This document shows positions 1-34,056 of a stretch of 64,000 nt of DNA, one piece after another. The notes below the pieces were generated by a model. That model searched no databases. It worked only from the letters and a program-made list of their open reading frames with translations, and was not told the origin of the DNA. The first letter of the stretch is position 1, and each line of letters begins with the position of its first letter. A program made the translations under genes and the position numbers. The stretch is from Obrimoposthia wandeli (taxonomy: Eukaryota), in NCBI GenBank assembly GCA_977020255.1, contig CDROCS010001161.1, positions 1 to 64,000 of the forward strand, in the 5' to 3' direction.

Positions 1-3000
1 ATTGACACAGGATCAAGCGTAACAGTTTTAGACGAATCTTTCTTAAAAACACAACAAAAATTACTTCTTCTTAAGGAAAATAGTCAAATCACAGCAGCAA
101 ACGGTCAACCCGTAAATATAATAGAAAAATTAGACTGTCTTTTTAAAATAGGAAATAAATTCATAAAAATACCTACAGAATAATGTGTCCTTGCCAAATG
201 ATCATAGGATACACTAAGAAAATTAGAGTAATTTCCATTTTGATTTTGAAAAAAATCAAATAAAATACATTTAGACCTAAAGCCAAAAATGAATACGAGT
301 TTAGAAATAAAAGGAGATATCATTCTCCAAGAACAGAAACAATGTTACAACTAGAAACTAACATAATCACAGAAAAAGATGTATTATTTGAACCTTATAA
401 ATATCAACAAAACCTTGAACTACGTTTTGCCAAATATAATTTGTAAATAAAAACAACACAATACCAATCAGAATCCTAAATGCAGACATTAATGTAATTC
501 ATCTCAAGGAAGGAGTACGTCTTGGAAAAATAAGTGTTATTGAAAATATTGAATTAATAGATAATGAAAAAAATAGAAGATAAATCACGATAAATTTTAA
601 CGATATCAAATTAAATGATTATGAAAAATCAAAACTTAAAACTTTAACAGAAAAATATGATGTAATATTTGCTAAAAATGAATACGATTTGGAGTCGAAC
701 AAATTTGATAAAAACAAATCTTCCGTTAACAACAAACACAACAATAACAACGACCCTACCAGAATTTATATGCCTACAGAGATGAGGCTCAAAGACAAAT
801 AAAAGGAATGTTAGAAAATGAAATTGTTAGAAGAAGTTTTACTGCATGGACATCACCTGTTGTTTTAGTAAAAAAAAGAAAAGATGGTTCTTTGAGATTT
901 TGCATAGACTACAGAAAACTAAGCAGAAGTCACTCACAAAAGATGCTTATCCACTGCCAGAGGTGATGAAATATTAGACAAACTAAAAATGCACAAGTAT
1001 TTACAACTTTAGATTTACAGAGTGGATACTGGCAAAATAGAAATTGAGGAGTCAGATAAATATAAAACAGCTTTCTCAACAGGAGAAGGATTGTATGAAT
1101 TCAATATCTTACCATTTGGATTAACCGGAGCTCCAGCAACATTTAAAATCATATGAGCCATATTTTTAATGGATGCAGATCACGTAATGGTATATATCGA
1201 CGACATTCTTATTTTTCAAAAATTTTGAAGAACATTTAAAAGATTTAGAAAACGTATTCTTAAGATTACAGGTAGCAGGATTAAAACTAAAACCAAAAGA
1301 AATGTGAATGGATAAAAATAAAGTAAATTACTTAGGACATGCTGTATCAGCAAAGGAATACAACCAGACGAGAGTAATGTGAAAAAAGATTAAAAATTTT
1401 CAATCAAAAACAGTAAAATATACAGGAATTTTTGGACTTGCAGGATATTATCGTAAATTTATTAGAGAAATTTCGCCCAAATAGCAATACCATTAAATAA
1501 ACTTATTAAAAAAAATGAAAAATTTGAATGGGAAAAAAACAACAAAAGAATCTTATGAATATTTAAAACAAAAATTAATCGAAAAACCTATACTTAGATA
1601 TCCTAATTTTTAATAACTCATTTTTTAGTTATGACTGACGCCAGTGGTTATGCGTTAGGAGCAGTTTTAAGGACAACAGGAAAATAACGAAAAGATCATG
1701 TGATAGCATATGCGAGCAGAGGTCTTAAAAAACATGAGAAAAGAATTACTCAACGATAGAAAGAGAATGCCTAACTATTTAGCTTCGCAATGGAACATTT
1801 TAAACATTACTTATTAGGTCGAAAGGTTTATGTTTACACAGATCAAAACCATTACAATGGCTTTTTAAATCATAAGGATAACATCTGATTAATGAGATGG
1901 GCATTGATTTTACAAAAATATGATATTGAAATAAAATATAGAAAAGGAAAATCTAACGCTAATGCCCAGATTGTCTATGCGAATAAGAGAAGAAATAAAC
2001 GAAATAACTACAAACGACATCGAATTAAATCTTTTTACAATAATTCAAGCTAAATATGATGAAAAAGTAATTACTAAACTTCAAAGAAAGCAAAGATAAT
2101 GAAATTCAGCAAATAACTTAAATACATTAGCACAAACGAAGTACCAACAGATGAAAAATTAGAAAAACATTTAAAAATTCACGAATCACGATACAAATAT
2201 AGTAATGAAATATTATATTATTTAAATGACAAAATCTATATTCACTAGTTATTCCTAAAGAAATTCAGTGTCAATTACTTCTTCAATATCATAATGGAGC
2301 CCTAGGAGGACATTTATCATCAAAAAAGACACATTCACGATTAAATTTAAAATACTATTGGATTGACATGAAAGAAGATGTAAAAAATTGGTTTAAAACA
2401 TGTGAAATATGTCTTAAACGGAAAAATACTTTACGTACCACAAAAATACCTTTAAAACCAATACCTTATCCATCAGCCCCCATGGAAACTGTTGCCATGG
2501 ATGTAATGGGACCATTACCTGAAACACCTCGAGGAAATCGATATATAATAGTATTTTCTGATTATTTTACAATATGGCCAGAGGCTTTTCCAACACATGA
2601 TCATAAGGCTGAAACCATCGCGAAGGTTTTAGTCGAAAAAATTATTTTTACTTTCGGTGCACCCCGAAAATTATTAACCGACAAAGGTCCTGAATTTATA
2701 AATAATGTATTAGCGTCAATAGCTGAAATTTTTCACATAAAAAAGATCAATACAACACCATATCACCCTCAAACTGACGGGTTAGTAGAAAGATTTAATA
2801 GAACCCTCGAAGATATGATGGCATCATACACAAACAACAACCAAACAGATTGAGATTTACACATACCTCCATGCCTTTTTGCATATAGAACATCAGTACA
2901 TGCATCCACAGGAGAAACACCTTTTTATCTTATGTTCCTCAGAGATCCTCAAATGCCTATTGACCTAACATTACTACAACCTACTACACAATATTTAGAA

Positions 3001-3408
3001 ATACTTGAATATAAAATAGAAATTAGAGAAAGAATAAAACTAACATTCGAAAAAGCTAAACTATTTGTAAAAAACATACAAGAAAATTACAAAGAATATT
3101 ATGATAGAAGAACTAAGCCATCAAATATAAAAAGCGGAAGTAAAGTGATGATTCACAATCCACAAATTAATGTAGGATTGTCTCACAAATTATCAAAACC
3201 ATACAAAGGACCATATACAGTCATTAGTACCAACGGAACCAACATAACAACTAAACTAGATAATGAACCAAAATCAAAAGAAATAAGAGCACATATAAAC
3301 AGATGTCGAGAAATACCTGAGGAGAATACAAAAGTAAAAAGTCACAAATATAACTTAAGATCAACTAATGATAATACAGTTCTACAAATGTTGACAATAA
3401 AAAACTAA
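1..3408 (+). pseudogene. pol: Ty3/Gypsy pol (protease, RT, RNase H, integrase) with several frameshifts and stops
   Basis: IDTGSS at 1; [39 protein letters not shown] and YIDD at ~845-1210; TDASGYALGAVL and IAYASR at ~1630-1720; zinc finger H..GH/CEIC; integrase core 2368-2853 (MDVMG, TDKG, GLVERFN); GPY motif in 2932-3408. Confidence 0.97.
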
Positions 3409-3459
3409 CAAAAACAAAATAAAACTATTTTGAGTCATCAAACCAGAAATACAATAAAA

Positions 3460-4718
3460 ATGTCAATAAAAGAAATTGGTAAAATAATGATGTTATTGAT
3501 AATATATTTTACAATAAAATATAACCTACTGAAAGTAAACGCAACAAACATAAATGACAATCAATCAATCATACAACAACAAACAAATAAATACGACTCA
3601 ACAACTCATCTCATAAATATTTTGGACTAATAACAATAATACCTGAAATCACATCAATAAAGTTAAAAATTTCTCTTCTTACAAACAAAACAGGAAATGT
3701 ACAAATCACACAAACAGATAGAAAACAAAATATAATTATTTCAGGAATAAAATCACAAAAATATACAATACCATTTTTAAGAACAGAAACACAATATAAA
3801 ATAAGAATTAAGTCGAAATTAAAAAATATAACACTCTATGAAAGAATTATAGAAACTCACATATACCTAGCATCAATATTAAAAACAACAGCAAAATATA
3901 TATCAAAACATAAAATAATGATAAAATGGGAATTTCAACTAAAAATAGATGACTTAGATAAAGCCCTCATTAGAATTAGATATAGAGGACATAATGCTAA
4001 TTTTTGGAAAGACTCAGAAAAACAATTAGAAAATACACAAACTAAAACAAATTTAACCATAGAAAATATAAGATATCCAGAGAAAATAATAATGGATAAT
4101 AGAGAATGCCTTTTTTTTTTAAATCTTTTCACTAATAAACCAATAATGTACAGACAATGGAGTCAAAAGTTTGAAAGTTATAACAATCTAACAAAATTAA
4201 CAATTTTAGGAAATAAGATATCCAAACTATATCAACCTACAATTTTTTGTGGTCGTTGGTCACCAGTAAAAATTAAGAAATATGTTAAAGAAATAACCAC
4301 AAAACAAATGCTACATACCACAACATTTACATCAAAAATTTACAGAGTTACAAATCAAGTTGAAATTACGGAGAAAATAAGAATTAAATTAAAATTAAAA
4401 ACAACAAAAACAATATCCTATAAATCATTTATTGAAAGTTTAAAAATGCACTATGGTAAACAAGAACATTCAAGGAATGAAGATAAAAAAGAACTTATAA
4501 TAATAGTTATAGTAATCGAAATAATTACATTTATAAATCAAATATCATGGAGAATGTTAATTTTGAAACATACAAAAATGATAGAAACAAAACAACGAAA
4601 ACACTTTTGTGGCCCCCCAGGCCCTTTTACTATTTATATTATTCCCAAGGATGAGAATTCTTCAGAATTATCCATAAATACTGTAATAGAAAATAGGAAA
4701 AGAAATATAACACAATAA
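3460..4718 (+). pseudogene. Post-pol ORF: predicted type I membrane protein with FN3-like segments; one frameshift near 3620
   Basis: Signal-like MMLLIIYFTIKYNLLKVNA; the frame of ORF 3918-4718 is open back to ~3620; FN3-like KYTIPFLRTETQYKIRIKS and IMIKWEF...IRIRYRG...W...NLTIENI; N-glycosylation sequons; hydrophobic LIIIVIVIEIITFI near the C-terminus. Confidence 0.55.
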
Positions 4719-4912
4719 TCAAATCCTTTTTAAATAAAACCATTTAAGTAACAAAAAATGTTAGTACTATTAAGTAAATCTAAATTAGTTAGGAAATAGA
4801 ATAAAAATTTGATATGTGTATATTTTAAAGACGATTTAATGAAATAATATTAAAATAAAATCACCAGGAAACGCATCCTGAAATTTAATAATGGTTATTT
4901 TTAGATATAAAA

Positions 4913-5308
4913 ATGAACAGATTGGCAAAAGTTTGTAAAAAATGCAAAAAATTAGAGAAAAAGATTCGAGTAGTTTCCAGACAGCATGACGACTACTATA
5001 TAAAGATCACAACTCAAAATGAATCACTGAAACAGTCAATAAAACAAAGTGTGGAAGAAAAATTGAATAATGATATGACAATTGACGAACTAGAAGGGAG
5101 ATTAACATATAGTTTTGGCAGAATAGACTATTTAATACAACAAACTTTAAGTCAACGATCAACTATAGCCTCATTAAGAAGACAAATGATGACCTATAGC
5201 GATATGATAAACTTTTATATGACCATTAATCCTACTATCCCAACTAATACAACACTTGATGATGGATATGACTCGGATATGAACATTGGTGAACAAAATT
5301 CTGGTTAA
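4913..5308 (+). CDS. 131-aa hypothetical cargo protein with N-terminal CxxC and probable coiled coil
   Basis: Intact ATG-to-stop ORF with AAAATG context inside the element; heptad-like helical middle; acidic tail. Confidence 0.5.
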   Translation: MNRLAKVCKKCKKLEKKIRVVSRQHDDYYIKITTQNESLKQSIKQSVEEKLNNDMTIDELEGRLTYSFGRIDYLIQQTLSQRSTIASLRRQMMTYSDMINFYMTINPTIPTNTTLDDGYDSDMNIGEQNSG

Positions 5309-5476
5309 ACTATAACCATACATCCTTCTTTTGTACAAATTGTCTAACTTTTTATTAATAAGTTTATTTTCATGACAAATCCCACATACTGCATGGATAA
5401 GACTGATATTTTTATAACTTTAAGACTGTGAAATAATTATATTATTGTATTCAACTAACAAATTGATTAAAGCAGA

Positions 5477-6645
5477 ATGGATAACAATCACCTGGATATG
5501 ACTCCAGACCAGCTCACTCGGTCAGATCAAACAAAAAGCACAGCAAAAATAGAAAGAGGAAAAACGGAAAATATGCCAGAAAGGTGGTATTTAGCAAAAT
5601 TCCTGTATCAAAAGATGCGTCAATTTAGCATTGCATACTTTAGAAACAACGGAGGAAGAAAAATGTTTTCAAATCAAACATTTCTTCCTAATAAGTTAAA
5701 AATTACCACAGAAGAAAGAACAAGCGCACTTATTTTTTCCAATGAAAAAAGACCAACCATATGGCTCTCAGCGAAATATTCCCCGATATTAATTGTGAAA
5801 AAATAGATATTCACGTGGCACTAGGAGTGGCCCATTTAAAAACCAAATCAGATAAGACATTAAACTTTCTGATGATAGGAAATCACACCTACACCTTACA
5901 AGCAGCTCAATTAGAAAATTAATATAGCATAAAAATAGGAAGAGGACCAAATCTATTATTTATAGAAAAAATAAGAAAAGCAGAAGAACCTCAACAAATA
6001 GCCCTTTTCGAATTAAAAAACGCACAGAAACCAGCAATTTTATTCCTCGATTGCGAAATGGTGATATCAGTAGATAAACAGCCAGTTTTAGCAAGTGTTT
6101 CTATTATAAATTACATAGGTAACGTAATTATAGATACACTGTGCATAACTAGAGATAGAGTAAGAAATTACGTTACTAGAATAACTGGACTGTCAGATAG
6201 AAAGTTACAAGGATGTAGAGATGCTGATGAAGTAATTGAGGAAGTAAAAAACATTGTGTATGGTAACATCATCGTAGGTGTGGGACTAACAAACGATTTA
6301 AAAGCTTTACGCCTACAGAAATGAATGTTATTCAACATTGTTGATTTAGGAATATCTAAAAGCATAAAATCAGAACTAAATCACAATCACCCAAATATTG
6401 GACTCGCCAACATGGTGCGGAAATACTTAAATATAGAAACACAAAAAGGAGTCCACACTAGTATGGAAGATGCAAATCACACCCGAAAGATTTTCATAAT
6501 AAAGGAGGAAATGTTGAATAGAGAGTTTGATTTGACCGAGGTGATGAATCCACCATCTAGCGAGAACAACCCCAGTTCATCGTTCTCACATAAGACCGGA
6601 AACTCGGAGTCCGGTACACAAAACTCCCCGATTTTGTTGGATTAA
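5477..6645 (+). pseudogene. Cargo ORF ending in a REX4/ISG20-family DEDDh 3'-5' exonuclease (frameshift ~5760-5800, stops at 5920 and 6322)
   Basis: ExoI FLDCEMV (6043-6063), NYVTRITGL, ExoII IVGVGLTNDLKAL, ExoIII HTSMEDA; ORFs 6058-6324 and 6325-6645 are in one frame, separated by a single TGA. Confidence 0.88.
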
Positions 6646-7064
6646 GGTAGTATTATTATTATTTTTATTCTGTTTTCATTCTTGTCTAAATTTTTAACGA
6701 TATTTAACCAGACATGATTGTGATTAGTAAAACATTGATCAGTTATAAGTTATATAACTTACAAATAATAACATATAACATACAAACAACACTAGTTAAC
6801 AATAGAAACAAGACAAAATAGCTTTACTAATAATTAAGAAAAAAATTATAATTCTGAGGACAGAGACTTTTATGACCCTGAGGATTGTTGGGAAAATATT
6901 AAAGCTATTTATTTAAAAAAATATATAAATATATATATAAAATTTTTAAAAAGTAAAAAAAAAAGAATTAATTAATTAAAGAATTAATTAAGAACTTTCC
7001 TTAATTAGGGAAAAGTTCTATTTTGAAAATATGCACTTTGGCATTTTAGTCTCTAGATAAATCA

Positions 7065-7116
7065 ATCTCCGACGGGAAAAAAGCCCGTTTCGCCCTGCCG
7101 GGCTCATCAGGGAGAT
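7065..7116 (-). ncRNA. Type I hammerhead ribozyme, canonical core, GUC cleavage site
   Basis: Minus strand reads AUCUCC-CUGAUGA-GCCC(GGCA)GGGC-GAA-ACGGG(CUUUUUU)CCCGU-C-GGAGAU. All core nucleotides and all three stems are perfect. Confidence 0.95.
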
Positions 7117-7535
7117 GGCTTGTTATCTCTGACTTTGCGGTGGATTCCGCGAAGCCAGAGATAACAATAATAAAGCCAGGGAAGAGGGAAAGATTCCCCT
7201 TTCATGTGCCGACGAATATCGTCGACAAGTGATGTTAGTGTGCGCAAGTGCACAATTCAACACACACACACTCACTCAACTTCTTTACTCACTCACAACT
7301 CACTCAACATTAACACTCACATACTCACTTACATACTCATCTCACTACTCACTCACTATTATCTGTGTGCGGTTTTTATTCCTGCAGTCAGATTGGAGGA
7401 TTTCGTCTCTGGGAAGAACTGCATAATTATCAATACTGCTGCAGTAATGATATAAATAGCAGCAATGGCCATTCAAAAATATATGGTTATTTTACTACAA
7501 ATTGGATCATAAAAATCATATGTTATTTTACTACA

Positions 7536-7827
7536 AATTGGATAATTGATATCAACCTATTATTTGTTGCCAGAAATTGGATAATTGATATCAACCTATT
7601 ATTTGTTGCCAGAGTTGGATAATTGATATCAACCTATTATTTGTTGCCAGAGTTGGATAATTGATATCAACCTATTATTTATTGCCAGAAAATTGGATAA
7701 TTGATATCAACCTATTATTTGTTGCCAGAAACTGGATAATTGATATCAACCTATTATTTATTGCCAGAGTTGGATAATTGATATCAACCTATAAATTATT
7801 GCCAAAATTGGATAATTGTTATTAACC
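7536..7827. repeat. Tandem array, 38-39 bp unit, about 7.5 copies, inside LTR A1
   Basis: Unit TTGGATAATTGATATCAACCTATTATTTGTTGCCAGAG. Confidence 0.95.
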
Positions 7828-8000
7828 AAAAAATATTTATTTGCTGAATATATTATTAAAGAAAACAATTTTTTTATTTTTCTCTCATTTATAACATGTG
7901 TGTGAATTCATAGAACTTTATTAAAGATAAACGTAGTTGTGATTAGTTTACCAAATTAGAATTGATCATGTTGTGTCATATATACGATACTTTTTAGATT

Positions 8001-8964
8001 TGTAAGGAGTAGGATTTTAATATTTATATAAATAATTAATTATTTTATAAGAAAATAAAACCTTGAAAGCTAGAATATTGATTTCCATTAAATACCAAAT
8101 TGAATATTGATTTTCTTTAAATACCATTTTGAATATTGATTTCCGTTAAATATCGTTTCAAGATTGATTCTCACTTAATACCAATTTGAATATTGATTTC
8201 TGTTAAACATAATTTTGAAGATTGAATTCCATTAAATACTAGTTTGAATATTGATTTCAATTAAATATCTTTTGAATATTGATTTCCGTTAAATATCGTT
8301 TCAAGATTGATTCTCACTTAATACCAATTTGAATATTGATTTCTGTTAAACATAATTTTGAAGATTGATTTCCATTAAATACCAATTTGAATATTGATTT
8401 CCGTAAACATCATTTTGAAGATAGATTTTCATTAAATACCAATTGAATATTGATTTTCATTCAATATCATTTTGAAGTTTGATACCCATTAAATTTAATT
8501 TTAAATAGGGAAGTACGGTAATTTTTCCTACGTCCAAAGTTTGGACCCTAAATGTTAGAGCAAATTTCTCAGAAATTAGAAGCGTGCAAATTATTAGATA
8601 CGTTTAAAATCGATACGTTAAGACATCCCCATTTGTGTGACGTTTAGTGCAGTAGTTAGGACTAATTGTTGTAATTTTTAGGAACCTAGTTAGAGTGTAT
8701 TGAACAAATCCCTACAACTGGGCAAGTACCAACCCACCATACACTACACCACAATAAGGGAAATTGTCCAGTACCCCATGCACACAACTCTTTACACATA
8801 TCCACAACACAGATTGTAAACAAAACCTTCAGATTATAAATTGAGACAGATAAGATTAAAATCTAAATAGGCCACGAACAACTGCAAGCCCTATTGCTAT
8901 AGAACTCACGTTGGGGGCCTCCATACGAGGATCTATTTAAGAGTTTCAAGTAGAAACCCCAACA
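8001..8964 (+). mobile_element. Solo LTR family B copy 1 (internally shorter)
   Basis: TGT...CCCCAACA flanked by TSD GATT (7997-8000 and 8965-8968); its 3' part is the reverse complement of the starts of the 12868 and 34057 copies. Strand is relative only. Confidence 0.88.
8073..8490. repeat. About 29-bp tandem array with a ~143-bp higher-order repeat
   Basis: Unit GAATATTGATTTCCATTAAATACCAATTT; the variant block starting at 8131 recurs at 8274. Confidence 0.9.
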
Positions 8965-10058
8965 GATTTATTTTTCAGAAAATATAACTTTAAAAATGAT
9001 TTTGTTACATATTTGAGGAACAAAAAAAGTTCTTGAGGTTATAATTTTAGGATAAAAGGTACTTTGGGTAAATTTTTAGTTTGTAGTAAAAATAAATTTT
9101 GGATTGATGCAGATAACTCATTTCAAATTTCTGTTGTGGTTGTTAAGCCAAATAAAAATTTTAAACAACAAAAACTATTTAATTATTTTTCTTACAGCTC
9201 AATATTTAGTACTTGGACCCTGTTTTCGAATCACATTAATTAATTATATTAATCACTACCTGATAGAGAATTTGAAATTTTTTTGGGAAACGATAACCAA
9301 CTTTCCACAATGTTTTCAAATTAGATTTTCTATATTACAATAGTTTCTTAATTACAATATTTTCTACGAGGTTTAAATTGAGGCTGTTAAATGTCCAAGC
9401 CCTTAAACCTATATTGATAGTTTTAAAAAGTCCTTGGTAAATTTTGATCGGTGAACATAAGCTCTTTGAAATGCTGCTTTGTATTTTAAATTTAGTATTA
9501 ATTTTTCTTTTAAAATGCATTTAATTGTCATTCATTATAAAAAGTATCATATGAGAATTTAATATATGGTTAATTTAATGGAAAAATTGAAATTGAGAGT
9601 TTGACGAATCGATATTTTAATTCTGCTCGGTTAAGATTCAAATCGCCGTCAAACGTGAATTATCTGTCCTATTTTGAGATAAAATCAATCACCTAATTGA
9701 CTTTTTTCACTTTAAAATATAACATTAAAAAATCCTAATGATAATTTGAAATTTTTAAAACTTAAACAAATTATTTTAAGGATTCGTTTCGATTTATGTT
9801 TGTATAAATAATTCGTGCAATAATTGTGGTAGAATTATTTCAATTCACTTGTCAAAAATATTAAAAAATGGATTTTTATTTTGAATTATCTGCAGATAAA
9901 CTAAAAATTCATATAATATAAATCTGTCAATAAAGCTATTGAATTTTTATATTCATTATTATTAGTTTAAACTATTTAATATATTTACAAAAACTATAGA
10001 CACGTCTGGAATAATATTGAATGTACATGTAGATTTTCTCATTCTGCGATGAAATGGT

Positions 10059-10173: not shown

Positions 10174-12867
10174 CATCTGAAAACATCTGTTTTACAGTAA
10201 GCAATTTTTTTATAGATTATATATATTTTTATTTTTTAATTTAATGCAGTAAAGTATATTTCTCATCATAAATTTTGTTCAAAACACATTTGATTATTTG
10301 TATGAGGAGGTTTAATAGTTTAGGGTTCTTCTTAAGAATCATCTGCATATTGTGGATTTATACAATTATGCAACTCTACGTTTAGTTTGTATGTGTCGTT
10401 TTAGCGTATGATAGAGTTATGAAATTACCTATATCTCTTTAGTTTCTTCTTTTCTTCATTTAATTACTACAAGCTAATGTGACTTTAGGATGAGAAGAAA
10501 AGGATGTAAATGAAAAAATGAAAGAGCAGTGAAAGTAGAAAAGAAAATAGAAGACGGTTACAACCGAAAAACTAGAAAATGATTGATAAGTTGCATTGTC
10601 CTGAAAGAAATATGGATGAAGACAGGGACTTCTTTGTAGAAATGTTACGAGAAGATCTTGTAATATCTGAATGTAGATAGATAACAATATTATATGTTTA
10701 ATTCATAACATACATTATATTGCTTGGTACTGTGAGGCTCAGAAATGAACGAATTTAGTAAAAATATTAAAATAAATGGCTTTATATATAGTCCGGGCAA
10801 AGAACATTTTGTAACCCAGAATAATAAATTAAAATTAAATAGATATATCATGTACAGTCTTCCTAGTCTAGTATCGACTCTTGACTAATCAGGTCGATAT
10901 ATAGAAATCTTTGTACGGCTTCTCATTATGTTGTTCAAGGTGCTGCTACTGGTACTCCTATTGGGTAGTGAAAAGCTCACCCAGGTTCTCCGATTTTGAC
11001 TTAGCTAGTCGATGTACTGCGACGGTTGTGAAGTTTGTTGCCGAGCTGAAGAAAGGTGTCCCTATAATATCTCCTCGAGTTTCATTTCCAAATCAACGTT
11101 ATTGAGGTAAGGCATAAAACTGAGAATATAATAAAGAGAGCATCTGACCGAGAACGAATTAGAATTAAGATAGTAGTTATTTAGCATATAAGGGAGTGGA
11201 TCGCGATTGAAACTCTATAGGTTTGGAAGCCTGGAAAATCTCAAATTGGCTAACAATGCATGTTGCATCTGAATGAGAGGGTGTGGTTGTTGGTGTTTTG
11301 GAAGTCTTTGTAAAAACACTTATCTTTTATTTTTTGCATATAATATATTTTAATGAAGTCTCGCATACAACTTTAGTGGTGGTGGTATGGTAAACGCGAT
11401 GATACAGTATTCCCAGCACATGTGGGGAATATCAGAAGTTTACCTAAAAGGTAGGCCAAGAATCGTTGTCACCTTCTCAAAATCGATTTTGATAAATTTC
11501 AAGAATTGTATTCATCTAATCTTTCAATTCTAGTTCACGACCTTGACCGTTGTGCCATATACTACCTGTAAACTTCGCTGGACGGTATAAAAATGTATAT
11601 GTCTCAGTTTGAAAAAATTACAGACACATATAGATTTTTACACACCAGCATGAAATTTCACTACATACTTACATGCACAGTTTTAAAGAACATTTGCGAA
11701 AAGGTAGCATTAGACCGGACTCATCCACCTACTAACTTTGGGTACAATAATCAAATAATCTGATTAAAAATTAAAAATTTAATATGATAATTGCTATTTA
11801 ATATCTTCATGATGAAAATTTTCGTAAAACTAAATTATCTGAATTAAAATCAGATTTAAAGCTGATATAATAAAAACGAATATGATTCCAAAGTTTCTAC
11901 ATTTGCATATGAAATGATGATTGGAAATTCTAATAATTGGATTAAAATAGAACTACAATTTGTTAAATAAAGCGTTTTAAGAATATTTTTGAAAATAATA
12001 TTAATTCATTTAATTTTAATTTCTTACTGTCAAACATATTTTTAATTTCTCGTATTCATGTTGCAATGATCAACCAATAATGACTTAGTTATTTTAATTT
12101 TATGCTTCGGATACCATTAAATATATATTTACTAAAATGAGACAAACATTTTTTATATATTGAACGTTATATTCTTTTTATTTTGTCGAGAAAAAAATTA
12201 AAATAGATATTGATTGGCTCTTTACAACCCCGTAAATATCACACATTTTCATTCATTAGCAAACTTCTACGATAACGAATGTCATTCCGTTTTTTTCCAG
12301 TTGAGCAAAATATAACAGCATAATAGTATAAATAAAATTAACATATTACTTACATTTGTAAAGATATAATATTTTAATAAAACTCAATATTTAATATATT
12401 TAATAATATTATTTATTGACACATTTAATAAAATTTTAACGTTTTTTAAAATAATTGATAATTCTTCTTTTCTTTTTGATCGATAAATAAATGATATGTC
12501 GTTTTCATCGGATGAATTTTTTTCTATATCAAATATATTATCACGTTCTAAGCTATCATCTTATTCCAAAGCATCATCATTTGCGATATATAATTCATCA
12601 TTTGTTTTCTCGATTTCTTCAAACATATCGTATTCTTCGTCATTATATATATCGTTTGACGCCATTGTTTAGAATTTAAAAATGTATTAAAATGATAAAT
12701 AAAAGAAACAAATTGTAAATATTAAAAAAATTAAAATTATAAATAATGTCATTTTTAATTTTTTTTAAATATGGATCTGTGAGACTCACATTGTATTTAA
12801 ACTGTTATTTTTAATATTATTTTTACAATTTTAATTATATTATAATTTTTCTTATAATATTTGAAAT

Positions 12868-14923
12868 TGTTGGGGTTTCTATATGAAACTGTTTTTCTAA
12901 TATAGAACCTCTGAATGGAGGGCCCCAATGTGAGTTCTATAGAAGCAGGACTTGTAGATGTTTGTGGCCTACTTAATGTTATGCTTGCTTGTCTCTAAGT
13001 TTTTCTGAAGGTTTGTTGTTTCGAAATTTAAAGGGTCTATAACAACGCTGTCTGGTTGTAGGAAATCGTTTATTACTAAGCACACTAAATTAACACGTCT
13101 AAGTACGTTCTAAAAATTACAATACAATTCCTAAGACTTTCGCAAAGTCTCTACACAAGTGGGGATGATCCACGTATCGAATTTAGTTTAGGCTTGGTTG
13201 GTCACTAGAGTCTTTACTCTAAAAATGTGACAAGGTTAAAGTAATATGTTTTTGGAGAGCTGGTTGCTCTAAAATTAGGGAATGAGTTTAGAGAGCTGGT
13301 GCTCTGAAAATAGGTGTTTAGTTTGTTTATTTTTAATTTAGTTTCAAATTTCTTGTTACAACACTTGGTAACAAACTGTGGACAATTTTCTATATCAATT
13401 GATTTGGAATTTATATAATTTTATTTCAAAAACGATTCAAAATGATTCGGAGTTGCTTCGAAATTGGGTTAGGGTTGTATAATTTTATCGAATAAATTAT
13501 TCAAAAATGATTATATAATTTTATTGCAAAATTACCCAAAAAGGATTATATAATTTTATCGCAAAATTATTCAAAAAGGATTCGACAATGATTTTAAATA
13601 TACTTGGAATTATATAATTTTATCTCAAAATTACTCAAAAATGATTATATAATTTTATTGCAAAATTATTCAAAAATGATTATATAATTTTATCTCAAAT
13701 TATTCCAAAATGATTATATAATTTTATTGCAAAATTACCCAAACAGGATTATATAATTTTATCTCAAATTCTTCCAAAATTCTTCTATAATTTTATTCAC
13801 GCTCCCACTCTTAACTTACCGTGATCTCTTTTCGAGAAGCCTCTCTTCTAGATCACACGAGTAGTCCGGCGATTCGCTTTGGTTGCTCCTTCCAGACATG
13901 GTTATGTTCCGTGCGTCTGCAGTCCTCTCTTTCCTTAGCTCCCGTACGGCTCGCTCCGAGATCGATCTCCTAGGCTCGGTCGACGGTTCCTTCCTTGGGT
14001 TGTTCTGTCTTTCGGATTGCGCTCCGTTTAAGGTGGCGGTTGATTTGATTACCGTGATCCTGCACGTCTGGGTTTTTAAAGTGTTCCTTGTCGGCTGCGC
14101 GCTTCTCTTACCTTTATCGAAGCTGCTTCCTCGATCCGCTCTCGATTTCCGAGATATTCTTCTTCCGATTTATTTCCACTTTCTGATCTGCAGGATTATC
14201 CAACTTTGGGATGCAACTCTTCTTTTTTGGCTCCTCTTAAAAACTCGATTTATTCCGACTTTCTATCTTTCTGCGCTGCTCGAATTTGATCTACGAGCTT
14301 CTAATTTCTGACGTGAAAATGACTGCAATAATCAAGTAAGTGTTTTGATTTATATAGTTTACCTTCTTCGATAGGCACTTTCCTTTTTCGGTTCTGTCAA
14401 TAAAGGCACTTTCCTTTTTTCGGTTCTGTAAATAAAGTTTTATTTACTTGCACTTAAAATAAGTGTACTCACTCTGGTGTCTGGGATCCGGCTGGACGGT
14501 TCGTAGCGTCCTCTGGTAGCGTCACTAAGTGGCCTAATGGATTTTGTTCAGGCCGGCTGTTTGGCTCCCAATGGCGTCGTACTACTTCTTGACTAATGGA
14601 AAATCTATTCCTCCTCAACTTGATTTACTACACTCCTGCTAATTGAGTTTAGCTTCTGGACTTTCTATTTAATTAATTACTTTTTTCTTATTAATTAGTA
14701 TTCTAACTCTTTTTTGGGGCCTTTTGGTTAAGTTTAAAATCCCTTATATACAGCACACGCTTACACATGACCTTCATGGTCCTAATATTTTCCCACTGAT
14801 TTTATTTTTATAATTTTAATTTTATAATTAATTTTATCTTAATTATAACCTTGCTTTCAAGGATTTTTATTTTAGTATAAAAATTATTAATTATTTTAAT
14901 TTAATCAAAACCAAATCTTAACA
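12868..14923 (-). mobile_element. Solo LTR family B copy 2 (2056 bp)
   Basis: TGTTGGGG...TTAACA with TSD AAAT (12864-12867 and 14924-14927); both ends homologous to 34057-36123. Confidence 0.9.
13400..13800. repeat. About 35-bp tandem array inside LTR B2
   Basis: Unit approximately GATTATATAATTTTATTGCAAAATTACCCAAAAAT; boundaries approximate. Confidence 0.85.
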
Positions 14924-15700: not shown

Positions 15701-17473
15701 GCTGAAAGAATGGTTGGGGTTTTCTTCCAACTAGAATCCTCGTATTGAGACTTCAAAAGTGAGTATTGTAGCAGTAGGACTTACAGATGGACATTATCTA
15801 CCTGTTCTAGTCTGAAGGTTTCTTGTGATGTGTGAAATATAATGGTAAAATCCCTAAAACTATTGTAATGTTGTGTGAGGCTGAACAATAAGCCGGTTAG
15901 GTCAAATGCGATTTTAGTTCAAATGAAGTCTAGCAAAGTCAAGACCAGGAAATTGGGCTAAAGTAAGCCGTACTTAATTGATGCTGACAATAACCTTCCA
16001 AATAATCAGAATTTAAGCTAGCATCTCACAGATTAATTCTCGTCTCAATATGTAGTTTAATTACACTAAATTAGTGTTGACTCAAACGGTGGAATTATGG
16101 TAGCGACGGTGTTATCAAAAGTCTTACTCATTTCGGTTGAATATATTTATTCCTATTATATAATTTAAAATATATAAAACGTTTAAAAATTAGACACTTA
16201 AGAACTCTTTAATAACTTTATGGTTTGTTTTTCTTCGAACTATGTTATACACGTAAAAGAGTTCGAACTATTATGTTGTTAAATTTATGAAACGGATTCT
16301 AAATTATTATTCGATTGAAATTTATGTTACAGATTCAAATTATTACTCAATTCGACTTAATATTACTGATTCAGACTTACGGTTGTTATATGGTTTCTTG
16401 ATAATGGGTAATACAGCAACAATTTCAAATAAAGCAACTTGGATTCCAACAATTGGTTTTATCAAATCACGCTAAACAATCCTCTCTAAATATTGTTAGT
16501 TAATCAATAAAATCAATTATATATATATGGATACCGAATCAAAATGTGAAATTCACGGACTATGTGAATTTAAGCTACTTCCGAATTCAGACCATCGCGA
16601 CTTTCGGCAAGGCGATTTCGATTCTACCTGTTATCGTTTATTTTTTAACATTCTTTCTTTACTTAAGAACACATTCTCTTGGCCTTTCAAGGTCTTAATT
16701 TATTTCTTTAAGTTAATAAAGATTTAATTTTACAACCTCCAAATGAAAAGATTATTTATTTAGAATATATTCTTTTTTATTATTTTAAATTCAGTCTTTC
16801 TAATACTAACAGATTTCTGACTATGTTTTGCTTCCTTTTACAAATATAATATTACTGTTATATTTTTTTTAATAAATATTTATGCAAAAATACAAAAATC
16901 TTACATCTGAATGTAGATTTATCAGATTTGCAATCAAAGTTAGTACATCAGAAAACTAAAAAAATATTGAAAATTCTCATGGTTAGGGAACTCACTGATT
17001 TTTCAACATTATCAATCATGCTATGCTGCACAATAAAGAACAAACAGTCGTCTGAAGATTTCATTGATGCCCTGAATTCTCGAAACTATATCTTTGAAGT
17101 CCAATCAGAAATGTAATTGTTTGCCCCATTAATTTTTGTATTGAATTTAATTTGCCATTTAAAATATAATTTTCAAATAAAAAAACATTAAAACATAAAA
17201 TACAGTTTAAAATATGTTTGTTATTTTTAAAGAAATTTTCTTTGTGAAATTATTCAAATTTGTCCCAAATGAAAGAATACGAAATATAGTCTATGTATTT
17301 CAGAATATTAAATTCCAAGTCATTAAAGATGGATAAATATCACAATTAACAAATAAAAGAAGATCGAAACAAAAATCCGAAAGGTAGTATCAAAGGCTTG
17401 ATGTTTCAATAAGTAAACATCTCTTAATATCGTCGTTGTCAGTGTCACACAACCTTATTCACGATCGCGAGGG

Positions 17474-20400
17474 TCAGGCCCAAACGTCCTCCATGTAAAC
17501 CTTGTTGACACGCAGCCCTGTCACAAAAGCCTCCGCCATGTGCTCAGTGACCAGTGTTTCATTGTGACCTTGCACCACCCGACACATGGCCTGCTGGACG
17601 TCCTTGACCATGGAACCAGCGTCCCCGCACACAAACACGCGGGCACCAGCATCAACCAATAGTGGGGCCAGTTCAGTGGCATGGTGACGCACACAGTCTT
17701 GTACGTAGTGGCAATCCACAGGTACGCACAGACTACTGCTGCTACCATTTTTGCTTGTGTCGCGGGAGAAGCAAACACAAAGATGCGCCAACACACCGCG
17801 ACTCAGAAATCCCTCCAACTGCTCCCGGAACAGGAAGTCACGGGCTTCGTGGCGACAGCCGTGAAAGAGCCAAACTGAACCGATATCCATCCCAGAGCTC
17901 TAAAATATTATTGGACATGCTACTTACATTTATCAATAATATACGATTTTTCAAAAGTTTTCTACAGCAAATTCTTTTAAACCTAGTAACTACGAGAAAG
18001 ACAATAATTTTATTTACTACTTTTAGAAGCAAACATGGTTTATAAGAATTAAGATAGAGATGGAAATTTAATTTTTTAAATCTTAACATCCACATAAGAT
18101 TTAATTGAGGACATTTTGAAACGTCTTGAAATGCTTTTACCGTGTTTTTTAACCGACACAGAGAATCTTTGCACTTTGTCAATTATAATTGTCTGTCACT
18201 CAAACCAGATATGTAATCCCACGAGTTGTGGGTATTGTTTTGTGACACATTTCAAGTGGGTTGGAAAACTCTTAAAGAGAGTTTATTGAAAATTGTCTAT
18301 TATTTGTCACTCAACTTTCAATTAAAAGTCCGCATTATTAGAATAACGAGACAGAAGTGTAAAGTACCATTTCTAGCTCATTGGTTGCCACTGTCCTTGA
18401 CTAACAAACTGTAGCTAACGGATGGATTAGGTGATGAGAGCCATTGATAAAGAAATAACTTGCATACTATCTTGATTTCTGTCAATTTAACAGTCGGGGA
18501 GTACACTTATAATCCTAGACAATTAATGTGAGGCGCGCCTTTGTAATAAGCGCACCCTGATTTCCAGTCAACTAAAAGCAGAAAATCTGCATATTCTCGT
18601 CCAGAACAACAAAATTTAAAATTTGCTGCGTTTGTGCGGTTGTTGACTCACCCTCAGTCGTTCAAAGTGTTGTAAGAACCCGATGAATGGAGCAACTCCA
18701 GTACCCGGACCAATCAGAATATGCGGCTTGTTCGTGTGCTCCGTAGAAATACAGAACCCGTTCAAGTTCTTCCGCATGTACATCGGGATCCGGATAACTG
18801 GCTCCACCTCGAGATCACGACTAGCAACACTGCAATTGATCAGTGCATGATAAATATGTGGTCAATAAAATTATCTTGAACCACTTTAAAAATCTATAAC
18901 AAATCAAGCACGATAAAAAACCAAAATTATTAAAAGTATCGAATATTACCATTTTATTACAATAACGTATTGAAATCTTCGCTAATTCCTTTATAAATGA
19001 CGACTTGAGATTAAACTTGACATATTAATTTACCATGACTGTTTGTAAATAAACTAGGGAAATCAAAAAATATCCAGATACAATACCTTTTTTATTTTCA
19101 ATCGGAATTTTGGAGTAAGGTCGTCATTTGACATAAAAAGACGTTAGTGATAGTGTCAATTAAAGTCAATTACAAACCCTGATTGATGAGGGTGACTGGA
19201 AAGACAAACACACAATACTAGATCAGAAGAAGCGGACTGCAAAACTTACTTCTCCAGCCATGTGGTGCAGACCCCAGTGAGAGGTCTTCGTCGGAATTGT
19301 GCAACTGGTGCAATGTCGACCTTACTAAATGCGAATGACAGCGAGTCAAGGTCGCAGAGAGAGTAGGAACGCGGCTTTAGTCGAGGAAGAACCTCAAGCA
19401 GTCGCGAAAGAGGCAGCTGGCAATCTGGAAACCAGTTCAGCAGATCCAGAACAGCCATGCTCGGTTCTCGCATGCATCTGAGAGTCAGGAGCATTAATCT
19501 GTAATCAGTTATGTCAAAGGTGACAAATTTAACTTTGCAGTAGTTTTCTAACAAAGTAACGTATCTATATTTTTACGGCAACTTTAATATTTTAATTGTT
19601 ATCGAGTAAAATATTTTTTAATACATTTATTAGTTGGTCAAAATACAAATACAGCTCCAAGACAGTTTACAAGAACAAGCTAGCTGATGATAAAACTGAA
19701 TGTGAAAGCAATCTAAGAAGCAGCACCAGCTTTGTTCGATCGTCGAGCTGCTTCGCCAGGGCTCTTCCTGAAATAAAAAGTCAATGATGGAGCGGAGATA
19801 GAGAATTGGCCGAATGAGTGACTTGCAACAAAATGCACAACATTTTCTGACGAAGAATCAAAAAACTACCTGAAAGATGTGCAGAATTCATTTACTACAA
19901 CAAAAACGCTGGAAAATTGTCTAACGAGTACCTTTTTGTTCACAGTAAAAGGGATTTGAAAGAAACGCTCTCAGACAAATGTGCACACTCCTGTCAAATG
20001 AGAGCACTGAGATAATTACGAGTGTGGAATGCCACATTTTATCCGCTTGAAAGTTTAACAAAAGTAGTTTCACCTGGTGTAAAGGCTCTGTCCTTCTTTG
20101 GCACACAGCTGCATCAGCCTCTGTCGAGCGGCAGACCCGGCGACTGCGTGCTCTGCCATGATGCGCAGTCCTGGCTTGGTTAGTGGAGCACGCAGGTCCA
20201 CCAGCCACTGCAGAACTGACCGCACAGACACCGGTCTCGGTGAGGTCACATCAAGATGTCCGGGCAGCTTGGGGGCACGACGACCTGGCGGGGCCGGCAA
20301 CAGTCGCAGCTCCATGGGACAGTCACGCTGTGCCTCAGGAACCCCCAATCGCACGAGGATGTCGTCCACCTCCCGCTGTGAGTTGCGAGGCAAGACCGAG

Positions 20401-23400
20401 ATGGAGTCGCCGGCATTCCATTTCCACTTGGGCTCTTCCTCCGCGACCACCGTCACTCTGTGTGACCCAAATGAGTAATCAGTAGTCATCCCTTCAAACA
20501 TCACCAGCTACTAGTTGCATTTGAATTCATAAAATATGCTCAGTAAAATTTGAAAGGCACAAAAAGCGACTGTGGTCGACTTGAACAGACACTCACAAAT
20601 GAACTGGCTTGACTGCGAACTTCTGTGTGATGCGCCTGACTGCTTGAAGACGGCCAATCGTCAGCGGAGTCTGGGCAGCAGGTAGCGCAGCAGCAACCTC
20701 AATTGGCAGACTGCAGTTGACCTTATCGCTGGTGGCTTCCTCGTACACGATGTCCAGGAAGGCAGACGACAGTGGAGGTACGGTGAGAGACATGTTTGCG
20801 AGCTCAGTCGCCAATTCGTCTCCCAGAAGGGATACAGTGGAACTTACAGCTGGCGGCGGGATCGGTACACAGATCTCGCTGAGACGGAGTTGGACCAGCG
20901 AAGAAACCAATTCGCATTGGTTAGAGCCTTGCTCCGATTTGAGGGAGACAAGACTCAGATAAAGACCTTCCAACCATGGCTCTACGACCATCTCCATTCC
21001 GACAGCATCATCGGCCCATCTGCAGATTAGCAAACTGACGTTGTGAAAAAATAAAACTATGCTGATTCAGAATTAGAAGAATAATCATCTTGTTTCACTT
21101 ATCAAACGTTTTGGATGATAAACCAATGATCTGAAATAATACATGCTAATAAAAGATTACAGACGGACAATGTTATGGTAACAGTAATAAAAATAGTAAA
21201 CTAAATTTACGGGTGAGCATTGCAAATTTGTTGAATTGCATTTGTGTCCATATATGGGTATCAAACATCTAGTTTATAAAAAAAATAACACTAAAGAGTC
21301 AACAAACAATTAATAAGTGTTTACAAAATATTCTCAAAAGTAGCAGTCAAGAGCAATGCTAAAATATTAACTCTCAAAAACACTTTCAGAATTATTAATC
21401 AATCAAATTATTAAATCTGTACATAAAACATTGTTTAAAAGCTACGTTGTTAAGGTTTCATATGTTGATATATAAAGAAAAAAAAATTTATATAAATGAA
21501 GATACCATTATGTTAAATAAGTTGTAAAGAGGTATAAGCTTTCAAATATTACTTAGATTGAAATAAAAATCAATAAATACTGTTTCTTTTTCGATATTTG
21601 GGACCTTCACTTTTGAAAAATTATTGAAATTCATGTGAAAAATATTTTAATAATTTCCGAAATAATATAATTTGAAATAAGTGGCGAAAGAAATAAAAAC
21701 AATCTTAATTATTAAAATGTATTAAATTTTTTTTGTAGGAATATGTAAAATTATCTAAATTTAAATTATTTTCTTCAAACGATGAATCACAGTATTCTTG
21801 ATTTTAAATAAAATTATAAATCTAGAATCCCCGGAAAGTTATCTCTGTTTTTAATATAAAATGCATAACTACAGACTGCAGATCAAAATAAAAATGATAA
21901 GGGTATTATCGAACAAATGAAATAATCAAAAATTCTGAGATTTATCATTTAATTATCAAATAGCTGTAGATGATTATGAAGGAAATAATAAGATTACACA
22001 AATTCACATATTCTAAAAATTAAAAGGTAATTTAATTCATTGTAATAATCAAGTTTTTTTTACTTCTTTACCACCTTTTTTTAAATTAAAGTATTTGAAA
22101 ATATATTTCTGAAATTAGTAAATTATTTTGTAATCAAAAATTCATTTTCAAGTTAGCAAAATTTTAAAATATTTGAAAAATTATTTTTACCTTCGATAAC
22201 TTCTCTTGAAAATTTCTAGTCACATTACATAATTAAAAGTACACGATGTTCTGAAGTGTATTAACCGATGATAAGATAACAATCCATTGCACGAAACATG
22301 AAAACGTTACCAGTTTATATTAAAATTTTAAATAAAATAATGTTTGAAAAGAATTTTCCTTTTAAGTATGTGTTAGCATTTGTAGAAAAATAATGTATAA
22401 TTACTGCATTACTTAAATTTAGTTAACTAAAGTCCAATACGCAACATCAATCTTTTTTTTGTGAAAAATAAATATTCAAACATGACAAAAAATATAATAA
22501 TGTTTAAAGATTATTTATGAGATGTGAAATAAATTTTAATTTACAAAATAATACTACACCCTATCAAAGTCGATATTACCGATAGCAATATGTTTAGTGC
22601 CGTTGACTCGTAAGTTTGTAATGTTTAGATGTTTTTTTAATAATTTTAGAACTAATTTGGATTATTATACATGAATAAGACAAGAAAAGGTGATTATTTT
22701 ATTAAAATTATGTTAAAATGAACTCAGGTACTAAAAATGTCATCTTTGTCCAAACATTGAATTGTATGGTTATATCCGAGAAATTGAGCCATATATATCA
22801 GTGTCGTGTACGTATTTTTAACCCGCCTCTCCATTAACAAATTTACCGCCGTTTTTGGATTTTGATACTCCTGTGAAGCCCCTGCTGATATTATTAGTTT
22901 GCTTATATAGTTTGCAAACAATTGCCCTGATTTATAAAAAGAAGATGCCAGTCTCATGCTTCAATCAAGGCCTCTTTGAGCTCATAATATTCTTAATTAT
23001 GAAGAAAACTACATTTCCTATGATTTTCTCTGAAAAACGACTAGCATCGGAGTTACGGTCAGTTATAAAGTTTTTTTTAAATATAATATTATAAAACATA
23101 ATTTCCGAATCTTCATAAAACATTTAATAGTTCTTCTACCATCCTTTCATCGTTAGGGGTATATTTTCTATGTATTTTAATCAAAAAAGCGGCACTAATG
23201 ACTTTTTACGGCACTATTCAATTTGTTAACACACCCTATAGTAAAAAATCACTAACAATTTTTTTTCCTGTCCTGTAGGTGTGTGACTGCATGCATTCTA
23301 TAGTAAGTAATTATTCAGTTTTTACGGCAACATTCTTTTTGGATAGATGCTGTTTTTTTATCGGTAAGTTTTACTATGTATTATTATTAATCTTATCTTA

Positions 23401-24038
23401 TACTATAGAATTATATGCCGACTCTTTATAACGGCACTAATCAGTTGGATTAGGTGTATATCAAATTTATGTAAGGTTTCCAAAATTAACTGAATCAAAT
23501 GTACTGTTATAAAAATAGGATCCAGCATTATTCTTAACTTTTACGAACAATAATATAACTAGAGTTAATGTAGAATTTAGTCTTTTAATTTTTGCTTCTC
23601 AATACCTACAAATAGTTTTTTTATAGTGATATAAATATAATATAACAAATATAACACAACGGTAACTCACGCTGAAGGATAAAATCTCTTAGCACCCAAA
23701 CGTGCCAAATTAGTATCAATTAGTTTACCACATCGACAAAAGTTAGAGTAATTTGTGTCACCGAGTCCAAGTACAGTGTAATTCAAATGCGATAAAGCAG
23801 TATCTGACAACTTTAAAAGTCTTAAAAATCGAGAAGCATTCTCTGGAGCATCCCCATCACCAGTTGTGGAACAAATTATCACAACAGTTTTTATAGCATA
23901 CAGATCATAACTCTTTTCAAGTTCGTCTAACTCGAATAAACGAATATTCAACAGAGTGCTCATATTGTTAAACACTGTTTCAGCCATACATTTAGCTTGT
24001 CCAGTTTGTGAGCCATATAAAATACAACTCATTGACAT
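17474..24038 (-). CDS. MTRR: Methionine synthase reductase, 6 exons: 24038-23671, 21019-20597, 20457-20074, 19477-19250, 18829-18652, 17899-17474
   Basis: Flavodoxin motifs YGSQTGQAK, STTGDGDAP, LGLGD; MTRR-type ADDAVGMEMVVEPW; FAD motif PRSYS; IGPGTGVAPFIGF; LFHGCR, VFVCGD and terminal YMEDVWA. GT-AG sites chosen by hand join all exons in frame. Confidence 0.93.
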
Positions 24039-24173
24039 AAAACTTTAAAATAAAAGTGTCAATTTTTTTTAAATTCAGTCAAAGAAACTCTGTACTTGAA
24101 TTTTTACAGTAAAAACAATTAGTCTAAATTAAAATCACATGGTTAAATACATTATTTCCAAATACATATAAAA

Positions 24174-26356: not shown

Positions 26357-26847
26357 ATTATTTTTATTTTTTTTACCTTTATTATTCATCAATACTAAGA
26401 TTTAGTATCATACATTTTTATTATATGTATAAAAAGTGAATTCAACCGTAAATTGATATGTGATATATTTTATTTTGAAAGTTTTCTTCATATAGATGTA
26501 AAAATATATTTGTAACATAAAATAGTTAAAGAAATTATTTAAATTCTAAATACCGAAATCGAAATCGAAATCTTCTCTTTCAAGATTATAGGTTTGATAC
26601 TTACTTTAATTTATTTGTATATGAATGAATATTTTGCTTATACATTTCTAATGAAATTTATTACGACTTGCAGGTCAACTTCACTCTGTACTTAAACTAG
26701 CTAAATGTAAATGCAAATCACCTCAATGGCACAACCAAAGGTCAATATACTAGTAGGTGTGTAAGGGTAGATGTTAAGTTTAATTAATTAAAAGTTAATT
26801 AAAAAGTGCATTCGGTGCACATTTTTAGAATCATTTTATTTTGGTCA

Positions 26848-33885: not shown

Positions 33886-34056
33886 TACATACTTACTGGT
33901 TTCTGTCATAAAATAATGGCTAGCAAGTATGATAGAAGCGATCGTATATGAATAATAAATTATTTGTGGTAACTTATCTTTCCGCGGATACACACGTACA
34001 TAAAGTAATAAAATAGTAACTAAGACACATGTGATTAACTGAATGCATTATCAATT

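Follow-up and report, generated by a model that had tools for sequence, protein, structure and literature searches.

Several described groups of retroelements each resemble in part the locus reported here, the broken copy of a Ty3/Gypsy (Metaviridae) retrotransposon that opens a stretch of 64,000 nucleotides from Obrimoposthia wandeli (assembly GCA_977020255.1, contig CDROCS010001161.1, positions 1 to 64,000; hereafter the window, meaning this whole stretch). PMC13524379 describes, citing Sacco et al. 2022, errantivirus-like Ty3/Gypsy elements with the gene order GAG-ENV-POL and an envelope gene of the herpes simplex virus glycoprotein B (HSV-gB) type from Nematoda, Bryozoa and Platyhelminthes. 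In bdelloid rotifers, the long terminal repeat (LTR) elements Vesta and Juno as well as the Athena elements, or Terminons, carry an accessory exonuclease as a third open reading frame (ORF3) after pol, whose function is unknown (PMC5408684). Hammerhead ribozymes are described from plant LTR retrozymes, non-coding elements that give rise to circular RNAs and have a sense-oriented type III hammerhead in each LTR (PMC4918200), and animal type I hammerheads are published in non-LTR retrozymes and Penelope-like elements (PMC7229834; 10.64898/2026.07.22.740005).

An earlier sequence-only reading of the window had proposed a single plus-strand unit running from a Ty3/Gypsy pol gene through a membrane ORF resembling fibronectin type III (FN3), a coiled-coil ORF and a DEDDh exonuclease into an LTR with an antisense hammerhead, a combination not known to it from any pol-encoding animal Gypsy element. 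Following up on this proposal, we arrive with fair confidence at a dead Ty3/Gypsy copy whose exonuclease gene is kept in its lineage, and whose neighbouring hammerhead module most likely lies, in antisense orientation, in the 3' terminal repeat. The coordinates of all features are collected in Table 1.

The window is AT-rich (about 28-30% G+C), contains no N, and has its first base inside the C-terminal half of the protease encoded by a plus-strand Ty3/Gypsy pol gene. The integrase domains are solid by Pfam (Integrase_H2C2, E 2e-18; rve, E 5e-11), and upstream of them the Pfam traces are weak, consisting of an aspartic protease at the window start, RVT_1 and RT_RNaseH_2. Positions 455-3375 are nevertheless colinear by tblastn, from the linker between protease and reverse transcriptase (RT) to the C-terminal part of the integrase, with the pol ORFs of two relatives, L023 and L024. 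The order protease, RT, RNase H and an integrase with both H2C2 and rve domains is that of Ty3/Gypsy, and the proposed pol gene is borne out by its integrase and by this colinearity, in a broken copy that is cut off at the window edge. Only one integrase is present in the 64 kb.

The two relatives are the contigs of two exonuclease proteins that bear an N-terminal motif discussed below, and were found by contig look-up. In both of them, an exonuclease (RNase_T) ORF of 420-446 amino acids (aa) lies directly 3' of a giant ORF that encodes a class III fusion glycoprotein (PF24664, E 1e-80 to 1e-93), protease, RVT_1, RNase H and integrase, and that ends in a tail of about 450 aa after the integrase; in L024, a gag with zinc knuckle (zf-CCHC) is found upstream of the giant ORF. 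The stretch from the envelope through the membrane-anchored tail is one ORF of 3000-4000 codons (L023 1-9897; L024 628-9636), and L023 additionally has ankyrin repeats between envelope and protease as well as a ubiquitin-like match near the start of the sequence (E 3e-4, below the Pfam cut-off). Across pol, the window shares 40-58% identity with the two relatives. Within the integrase, identity to L023 and L024 reaches 56-58%, compared with 47-48% for the best of 506 other matches, and it is 46-48% in the C-terminal part of the integrase and about 37% in the exonuclease. One of the integrase relatives at 47-48%, L008, carries neither an exonuclease nor a membrane region.

These comparisons indicate that pol, the membrane region and the exonuclease gene of the window form one plus-strand unit, as had been proposed, and that this unit is a conserved architecture of a retroelement lineage: both relatives show pol, anchored tail and exonuclease ORF in the window's order, the exonucleases share their N-terminal motif, and an A-richness of the plus strand runs without interruption from base 1 to about 7000-7200, covering everything from pol through the exonuclease, a bias that a host diflavin reductase gene in the same window does not show. 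By its gene content, the lineage comprises GAG, a gB-type ENV, a POL with membrane-anchored tail and an accessory exonuclease gene; that it would be of the GAG-ENV-POL type with a gB-like envelope gene had not been foreseen by the earlier reading. The envelope gene is seen between gag and pol in both relatives, and the window's copy begins downstream of that point, in the protease; positions 1-6645 represent the 3' two-thirds of the element, and its gag and envelope would lie upstream of the window.

In this order of gag, class III fusion glycoprotein and then protease, RT, RNase H and integrase, L023 and L024 resemble the GAG-ENV-POL elements, and a gB-like fragment of like kind is present elsewhere in the window. 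There, on the minus strand, an RNase H piece adjoins a piece of a gB-type fusion glycoprotein (37557-38657) within a second, rearranged fragment of the same lineage; the order of these pieces is unlike the env-before-pol order of L023 and L024. Where the present lineage differs from the published elements is in its cargo, since three independent sequences have an exonuclease ORF after pol, whereas PMC13524379 mentions no nuclease or accessory gene there. We found no paper describing this exonuclease, and a literature search for REXO4 together with retrotransposons returned nothing.

One frame change and one or two in-frame stops interrupt the exonuclease gene of the window, which nonetheless retains all acidic and histidine catalytic positions, with motif I (D-x-E), motif II (D) and motif III (H-x4-D) all present. 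Its C-terminal part, which holds the H-x4-D motif, matches relatives (hhalign E 4e-11), and its N-terminal piece finds relatives of 32-45% identity among 1.84 billion representative proteins (best E 7e-17). Taken alone, this N-terminal piece stays below the Pfam RNase_T cut-off (19 vs 24 bits), whereas the intact exonucleases of L023 and L024 pass at 27-28 bits. The closest solved structures, by best matches in the PDB, are ISG20L2, ISG20 and SDN1. Because of the H-x4-D motif and the RNase_T, ISG20 and REXO4 matches, we assign the nuclease to the DEDDh rather than the DEDDy type, in agreement with the original assignment, and the gene extends beyond the domain that was first described. The lineage retains this DEDDh gene with catalytic positions intact in at least three hosts.

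A short motif, Q[TN]x[IL]PNKLK, sets this gene apart from the cellular enzymes. It is encoded immediately 5' of the exonuclease domain in a different frame, and is common to the N-termini of a few of the matches: besides the window gene, only 9 of 173 fetched exonucleases have it, all of them unnamed, two of them confirmed as element-borne, and none a named cellular REXO4. Cellular REXO4, ISG20, ISG20L2 and plant SDN1 share the catalytic motifs and are the best sequence matches; the window gene differs from them in being encoded by a retroelement, in this private N-terminal motif and in an identity of just 32-45%.

This likeness to cellular enzymes raises the question of whether the gene is instead a processed pseudogene or an exon of a host REXO4, adjacent to a dead Gypsy fragment by coincidence. 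All named best homologues are indeed cellular 'RNA exonuclease 4' proteins (the top-scoring match, a cestode REXO4, is 32% identical, others 37-45%), the two homologues whose surroundings were checked, P0275 and P0129, sit among ordinary cellular genes, and the window's gene is intronless and broken. We nonetheless regard a host origin of this kind as very improbable, given that two unrelated contigs have the same exonuclease ORF directly after pol, that the N-terminal motif occurs only in the element-type group, and that the gene shows the same A-rich strand bias as pol and has no poly(A) tail at its 3' side. Since L023 and L024 share both gene order and motif with the window, we take the exonuclease to be cargo of the lineage rather than a stray host pseudogene; it was probably captured once from a cellular gene and then kept, along with the lineage-specific motif at its N-terminus.

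Accessory nucleases after pol have a counterpart in the bdelloid elements, and the claim of an unknown combination therefore needs qualifying, given that exonuclease ORFs in this position are published for Vesta and Juno (PMC5408684). Vesta, Juno and Athena likewise have an additional ORF for a 3'-5' exonuclease from the DEDD superfamily, and membrane and coiled-coil ORFs also occur there. They differ in that their nucleases are of the DEDDy, RNase D-like type, whereas that of the window is DEDDh and REXO4/ISG20-like, as well as in pol lineage and type of host, and no hammerhead is reported in the Vesta and Juno elements (PMC5408684). Because the window's nuclease is DEDDh and those of the bdelloid elements are DEDDy, the two are independent captures.

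The likeness to Terminons or Athena that had been drawn from the sequence fails on both pol type and nuclease subtype. Ribozyme, exonuclease, coiled-coil and membrane ORFs do co-occur in Terminons (PMC5408684, PMC6431247), which would make a Terminon/Athena-like, that is Penelope-like, element a conceivable source of the whole unit. The pol order is however that of Ty3/Gypsy, with H2C2 and rve integrase and RT_RNaseH, no GIY-YIG domain was found, the nuclease belongs to the other subtype, and the window is gene-poor with long introns. Given the integrase and the colinear match to Gypsy-type pol ORFs, we consider a Terminon origin refuted, with a negligible probability left to it.

Between integrase and exonuclease, the two additional coding regions of the proposal stand only in part. 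In the membrane region, 375 codons are open without interruption, and hydropathy shows one strong transmembrane-like hydrophobic segment near the C-terminus of this stretch; compared with the integrase, the region has one stop and one change of frame. Its positional counterpart in L023 and L024 is the tail of the pol ORF, which has two hydrophobic anchors. A membrane ORF in this sense holds up, whereas its likeness to FN3 does not: no Pfam family at E up to 1 and no PDB structure matches it, a search of 5.8 billion proteins returned no homologue of the 375-codon stretch, and its single-sequence AlphaFold model is unusable (predicted local distance difference test score, pLDDT, 29), leaving no FN3 domain recognisable by sequence or fold. 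Similarly, the ORF proposed to form a coiled coil is intact at 131 aa and is predicted by AlphaFold to form four helices (pLDDT 58), with matches to Pfam coiled-coil families that are weak and below cut-off, which makes a coiled coil plausible and leaves it unproven; no homologue of it was found. For both regions, profile comparison shows no sequence similarity to the relatives, which counts against the interpretation that we favour: there is none between the membrane region and the relatives' pol tails (E 0.17), nor between the 131-aa ORF and a small helical ORF of L024 (E 0.27). The latter is an 89-aa ORF (L024 11430-11699, plus strand), helical and heptad-like by eye, that lies just 3' of the exonuclease ORF, whereas the helical ORF of the window lies just 5' of the exonuclease gene.

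The window's copy of the element is dead. Aligned to the relatives' pol, its protease-RT-RNase H part carries about 28 in-frame stops in 591 codons (14 TAA, 7 TAG and 7 TGA), a load near the 40-61 stops of the two non-coding frames, with a single frame nonetheless kept throughout. The integrase part, which one frame change separates from it, has 1 stop in 378 codons. Decay is accordingly uneven within pol, heavy in protease-RT-RNase H and slight in the integrase, with the genes 3' of the integrase nearly open, and GC skew changes sign about where the stop-rich and the nearly stop-free parts of pol meet. Possible causes of this unevenness include hypermutation by substitution only, recombination between an old and a young copy, and constraint on the 3' genes alone. 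An alternative genetic code was also considered as the source of the in-frame stops, and was rejected because these are confined to one part of pol.

Downstream of the exonuclease gene, the antisense hammerhead of the original proposal is present as a motif on the minus strand. A search of 2 kb with the type I hammerhead model (Rfam RF00163) gives a full-length match at 7065-7116 (32.4 bits, E 1e-5), in which the conserved core is intact, the three helices form with helix I open, and cleavage is predicted after a GUC at 7072-7070. The minimum-energy fold of 61 nucleotides (nt) around it is the canonical three-way junction. The hammerhead belongs to a dispersed module of about 200 bp that occurs in four copies in the window (c1 to c4) and consists of a TTAATTAA-rich stretch, hairpin B, the hammerhead and hairpin A. 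In c2, the core and helix II are identical to those of c1, and helix I is different yet complementary. A covariance model, R1, was built from c1, c2 and c3, and the fourth copy was found with it; c3 and c4 form a subgroup without most of hairpin A. Scanning the 64 kb with the core pattern alone recovered two intact hammerheads, both with the same helix II, plus one match that is not a hammerhead.

Several of these observations could also be expected of a chance match devoid of ribozyme function. The score stays under the RF00163 gathering score (32.4 vs 34 bits) with no match at threshold in the whole window, the fold energy is no better than that of shuffled sequences (z -0.7), a competing fold is more stable once 188 nt of context are included, and c2 scores poorly in Rfam, all of which tells against our interpretation. 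A chance match would however hardly present the complete conserved core together with a GUC, nor would it be accompanied by a second copy that has an identical core and helix II and compensating changes in helix I. Across the three copies, a small sample, 6 of 15 base pairs covary with changes on both sides, and 93% of cells are paired, compared with 33-56% when the partners are slid against each other. We therefore give little credence to a chance match, and read the motif as a real, structurally conserved type I hammerhead for which self-cleavage is predicted. A further set of 14 metagenome sequences (L009-L022) matched the 24-nt stretch of core and helix II and was rejected as unrelated, being GC-rich hammerheads of prokaryotes or phages; their identity to the window's motif over these 24 nt looks like convergence on a short, stable helix II.

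Whether this hammerhead is part of the element is a separate matter, and here the proposal stands for the motif and its orientation and less well for its membership in an LTR. In favour of a terminal repeat, the module starts about 300 bp past the exonuclease stop, near the point where the A-rich bias fades (about 7000-7200), and plus-strand AATAAA signals follow hairpin A in both c1 (7169-7174) and c3, with a TATA-like AT-rich stretch preceding the module in c1. On account of these signals, the module could be the R region of terminal repeats that have otherwise diverged. In lying within a candidate terminal repeat and in its link with the Ty3/Gypsy world, the hammerhead would then recall the plant retrozymes, from which it differs in being type I and antisense to a coding element, and the element is not a retrozyme of that kind.

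A considerable list of observations weighs against this placement. The 5' end of the element is outside the window, leaving the terminal repeat unproven, and the copy is broken, so that activity cannot be read from it. The LTR as first proposed has no second copy in the window, with nothing beyond the hammerhead core matching, and around the other modules nothing corresponds to its ends at 6886 and 7896, the scores falling within the shuffled range. The modules resemble one another over no more than about 100-200 bp, as would be expected just as well of a small mobile element in its own right. Only c1 abuts coding sequence of the element, the other three modules being without adjoining element genes, and c3, given its orientation, could not serve the second element fragment at 37557-39250. 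In L024, neither Rfam nor model R1 finds a hammerhead in the 2.4 kb 3' of the exonuclease. Finally, were R situated here, U5 would be of unusual length and would include tandem repeats. No convincing polypurine tract is seen in the spacer that separates the exonuclease stop from the proposed LTR, and no transfer RNA genes were found that would allow a primer-binding site to be tested.

The same observations underlie the most serious competing explanation, namely that the module is a short independent repeat, SINE-like (short interspersed nuclear element), retrozyme-like or a fragment, that lies beside the dead element and is unrelated to its nuclease, in which case the element's own 3' LTR would be missing or unrecognised. 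Besides the short conserved length with unrelated flanks, the three modules without element genes and the lack of a hammerhead in L024, this would agree with the published type I hammerheads of animal non-LTR retrozymes and Penelope-like elements (PMC7229834; 10.64898/2026.07.22.740005), which likewise are repeated in animal genomes. Given a density of four modules in 64 kb, finding one as a neighbour within about 0.5 kb by chance alone is unlikely but possible, with a probability of a few percent. The window however contains no tandem hammerhead units and no Penelope-type RT nearby, and neither Penelope nor GIY-YIG domains were found among the 57 open stretches of at least 75 aa outside the element. 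Helix III of the present motif is a stable 5-bp stem, unlike the minimal, dimer-type hammerheads that are reported from Penelope-like elements. The start of the module near the fading of the strand bias and the poly(A) signals after hairpin A in two copies also speak for the element, and lone modules would be expected under a terminal repeat too, solo LTRs usually being more numerous than full elements. An independent repeat thus strikes us as possible and somewhat unlikely. Taken alone, membership of the module in a terminal repeat comes out slightly ahead of it, and we regard that membership as about an even call.

Tandem arrays, at first sight a further common feature of the modules, are of limited use here. 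A regular array of 49-bp units (27501-28092; 12 copies, 97% identity) lies about 550 bp downstream of c2 and parallels the 38-bp array after c1. In addition, the window contains copies of a repeat of about 450 bp that share 74-77% identity, each with an AT-rich tandem array behind it. In inverted orientation, repeat and array also occur together just 3' of the proposed LTR, which weakens the argument that the arrays belong to the modules.

Returning to the interpretation that we favour, an element with a lineage-kept nuclease, the exonuclease may trim or degrade the 3' ends of RNA to the benefit of the element. Its targets could be the small or double-stranded RNAs that guide silencing, or it might process the element's own RNA; because of the nuclease's nearest relatives, action on silencing-guide RNAs seems the most plausible of these. 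For the hammerhead, the least secure step is its placement in this copy within the 3' terminal repeat, roughly in the R region and antisense. Were it to lie there, self-cleavage, after the GUC at 7072-7070, would be restricted to antisense or read-in transcripts and would uncouple antisense RNA over the genes from its cap. Exonuclease and antisense R-region hammerhead could then act as a two-part toolkit that destroys antisense or read-in RNAs and blunts RNA-guided silencing, much as the sequence-only reading had suggested. We consider this toolkit unlikely, joint action of ribozyme and nuclease being speculation, and one relative has the nuclease without the ribozyme.

Table 1 Features of the element, of the hammerhead modules and of their surroundings (positions in the window; strand as noted)
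Feature	Position	Strand	Basis
pol: protease (C-terminal half), RT, RNase H, integrase	1-3375	+	Pfam; colinear tblastn to L023/L024 pol ORFs
Post-integrase membrane region	3376-4718	+	translation; hydropathy; position as in L023/L024 pol tails
Helical ORF, 131 aa, intact	4913-5308	+	ORF list; weak coiled-coil family matches; AlphaFold
Accessory exonuclease gene	5477-6645	+	N-terminal Q-T-x-L-P-N-K-L-K motif region and DEDDh (REXO4/ISG20-type) domain
AT-rich spacer, exonuclease stop to proposed LTR start	6646-6885	+	sequence; composition
LTR as first proposed, candidate	6886-7896	+	holds hammerhead module, GC-richer block and tandem array
TTAATTAA-rich stretch and hairpin B; module end lying 3' on the hammerhead strand	6960-7019	.	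sequence; four-way alignment; fold
Type I hammerhead, module c1	7065-7116	-	Rfam RF00163; fold; covariation; own covariance model R1, 86.7 bits
Hairpin A, near-perfect 44-nt inverted repeat adjoining the hammerhead	7122-7165	.	fold z-score -9.8; common to module c2
Tandem array, units of 36-38 bp, inside proposed LTR	7475-7827	.	repeat analysis
Repeat of about 450 bp with array, inverted, just 3' of proposed LTR	8818-8971 with 8073-8494	-	copies 74-77% identical
Repeat of about 450 bp with array	12864-13309 with 13471-13797; 34053-34508 with 34667-35166	+	copies 74-77% identical
Host diflavin reductase gene with introns	17400-24050	-	flavodoxin, FAD_binding_1, NAD_binding_1; NDOR1 or methionine-synthase-reductase type
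Module c2: intact core, covarying helix I, variant cleavage triplet, hairpin A	26842-26950	-	core-pattern scan; fold; covariation
Module c3: hammerhead-like fold, catalytic core mutated	33076-33137	-	sequence; fold; covariation; model R1
Second, rearranged fragment of the same lineage, broken	37557-39250	-	Pfam PF24664, E 1e-12; tblastn with L023/L024 ORFs
Module c4: degenerate hammerhead-like copy, closest to c3	43971-44036	+	model R1, 22.1 bits, E 8e-4; alignment

Beyond the element and the modules, the flavodoxin exon of the host diflavin reductase gene has a best database relative of 61% identity, and a weak trace of a DDE_3 transposase is seen at 55457-55714 on the plus strand (E 0.005, below cut-off). 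Exact look-ups of three ORFs from the window retrieved no recorded sequence.

Envelope-carrying Gypsy-type elements of animals have lately been shown to be ancient and widespread, and to our knowledge their accessory genes are barely catalogued. To this group, our analysis adds a conserved exonuclease gene of the REXO4/ISG20 type after pol, now in three independent sequences. Together with the DEDDy nucleases of the bdelloid elements, it shows that LTR retroelements have acquired DEDD nucleases twice, independently of each other. Convergent captures of this kind suggest that trimming of RNA 3' ends is useful to LTR retroelements. The hammerhead module, for its part, represents a structurally conserved type I family from an animal genome, to which neither the tandem arrangement of retrozymes nor the Penelope pattern applies. 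Among the nearest solved relatives of the nuclease are an interferon-induced antiviral nuclease and SDN1, a plant nuclease that degrades small RNAs, and these antiviral or small-RNA-degrading relatives give rise to a testable question, that is, whether nucleases encoded by retroelements may act on silencing RNAs.

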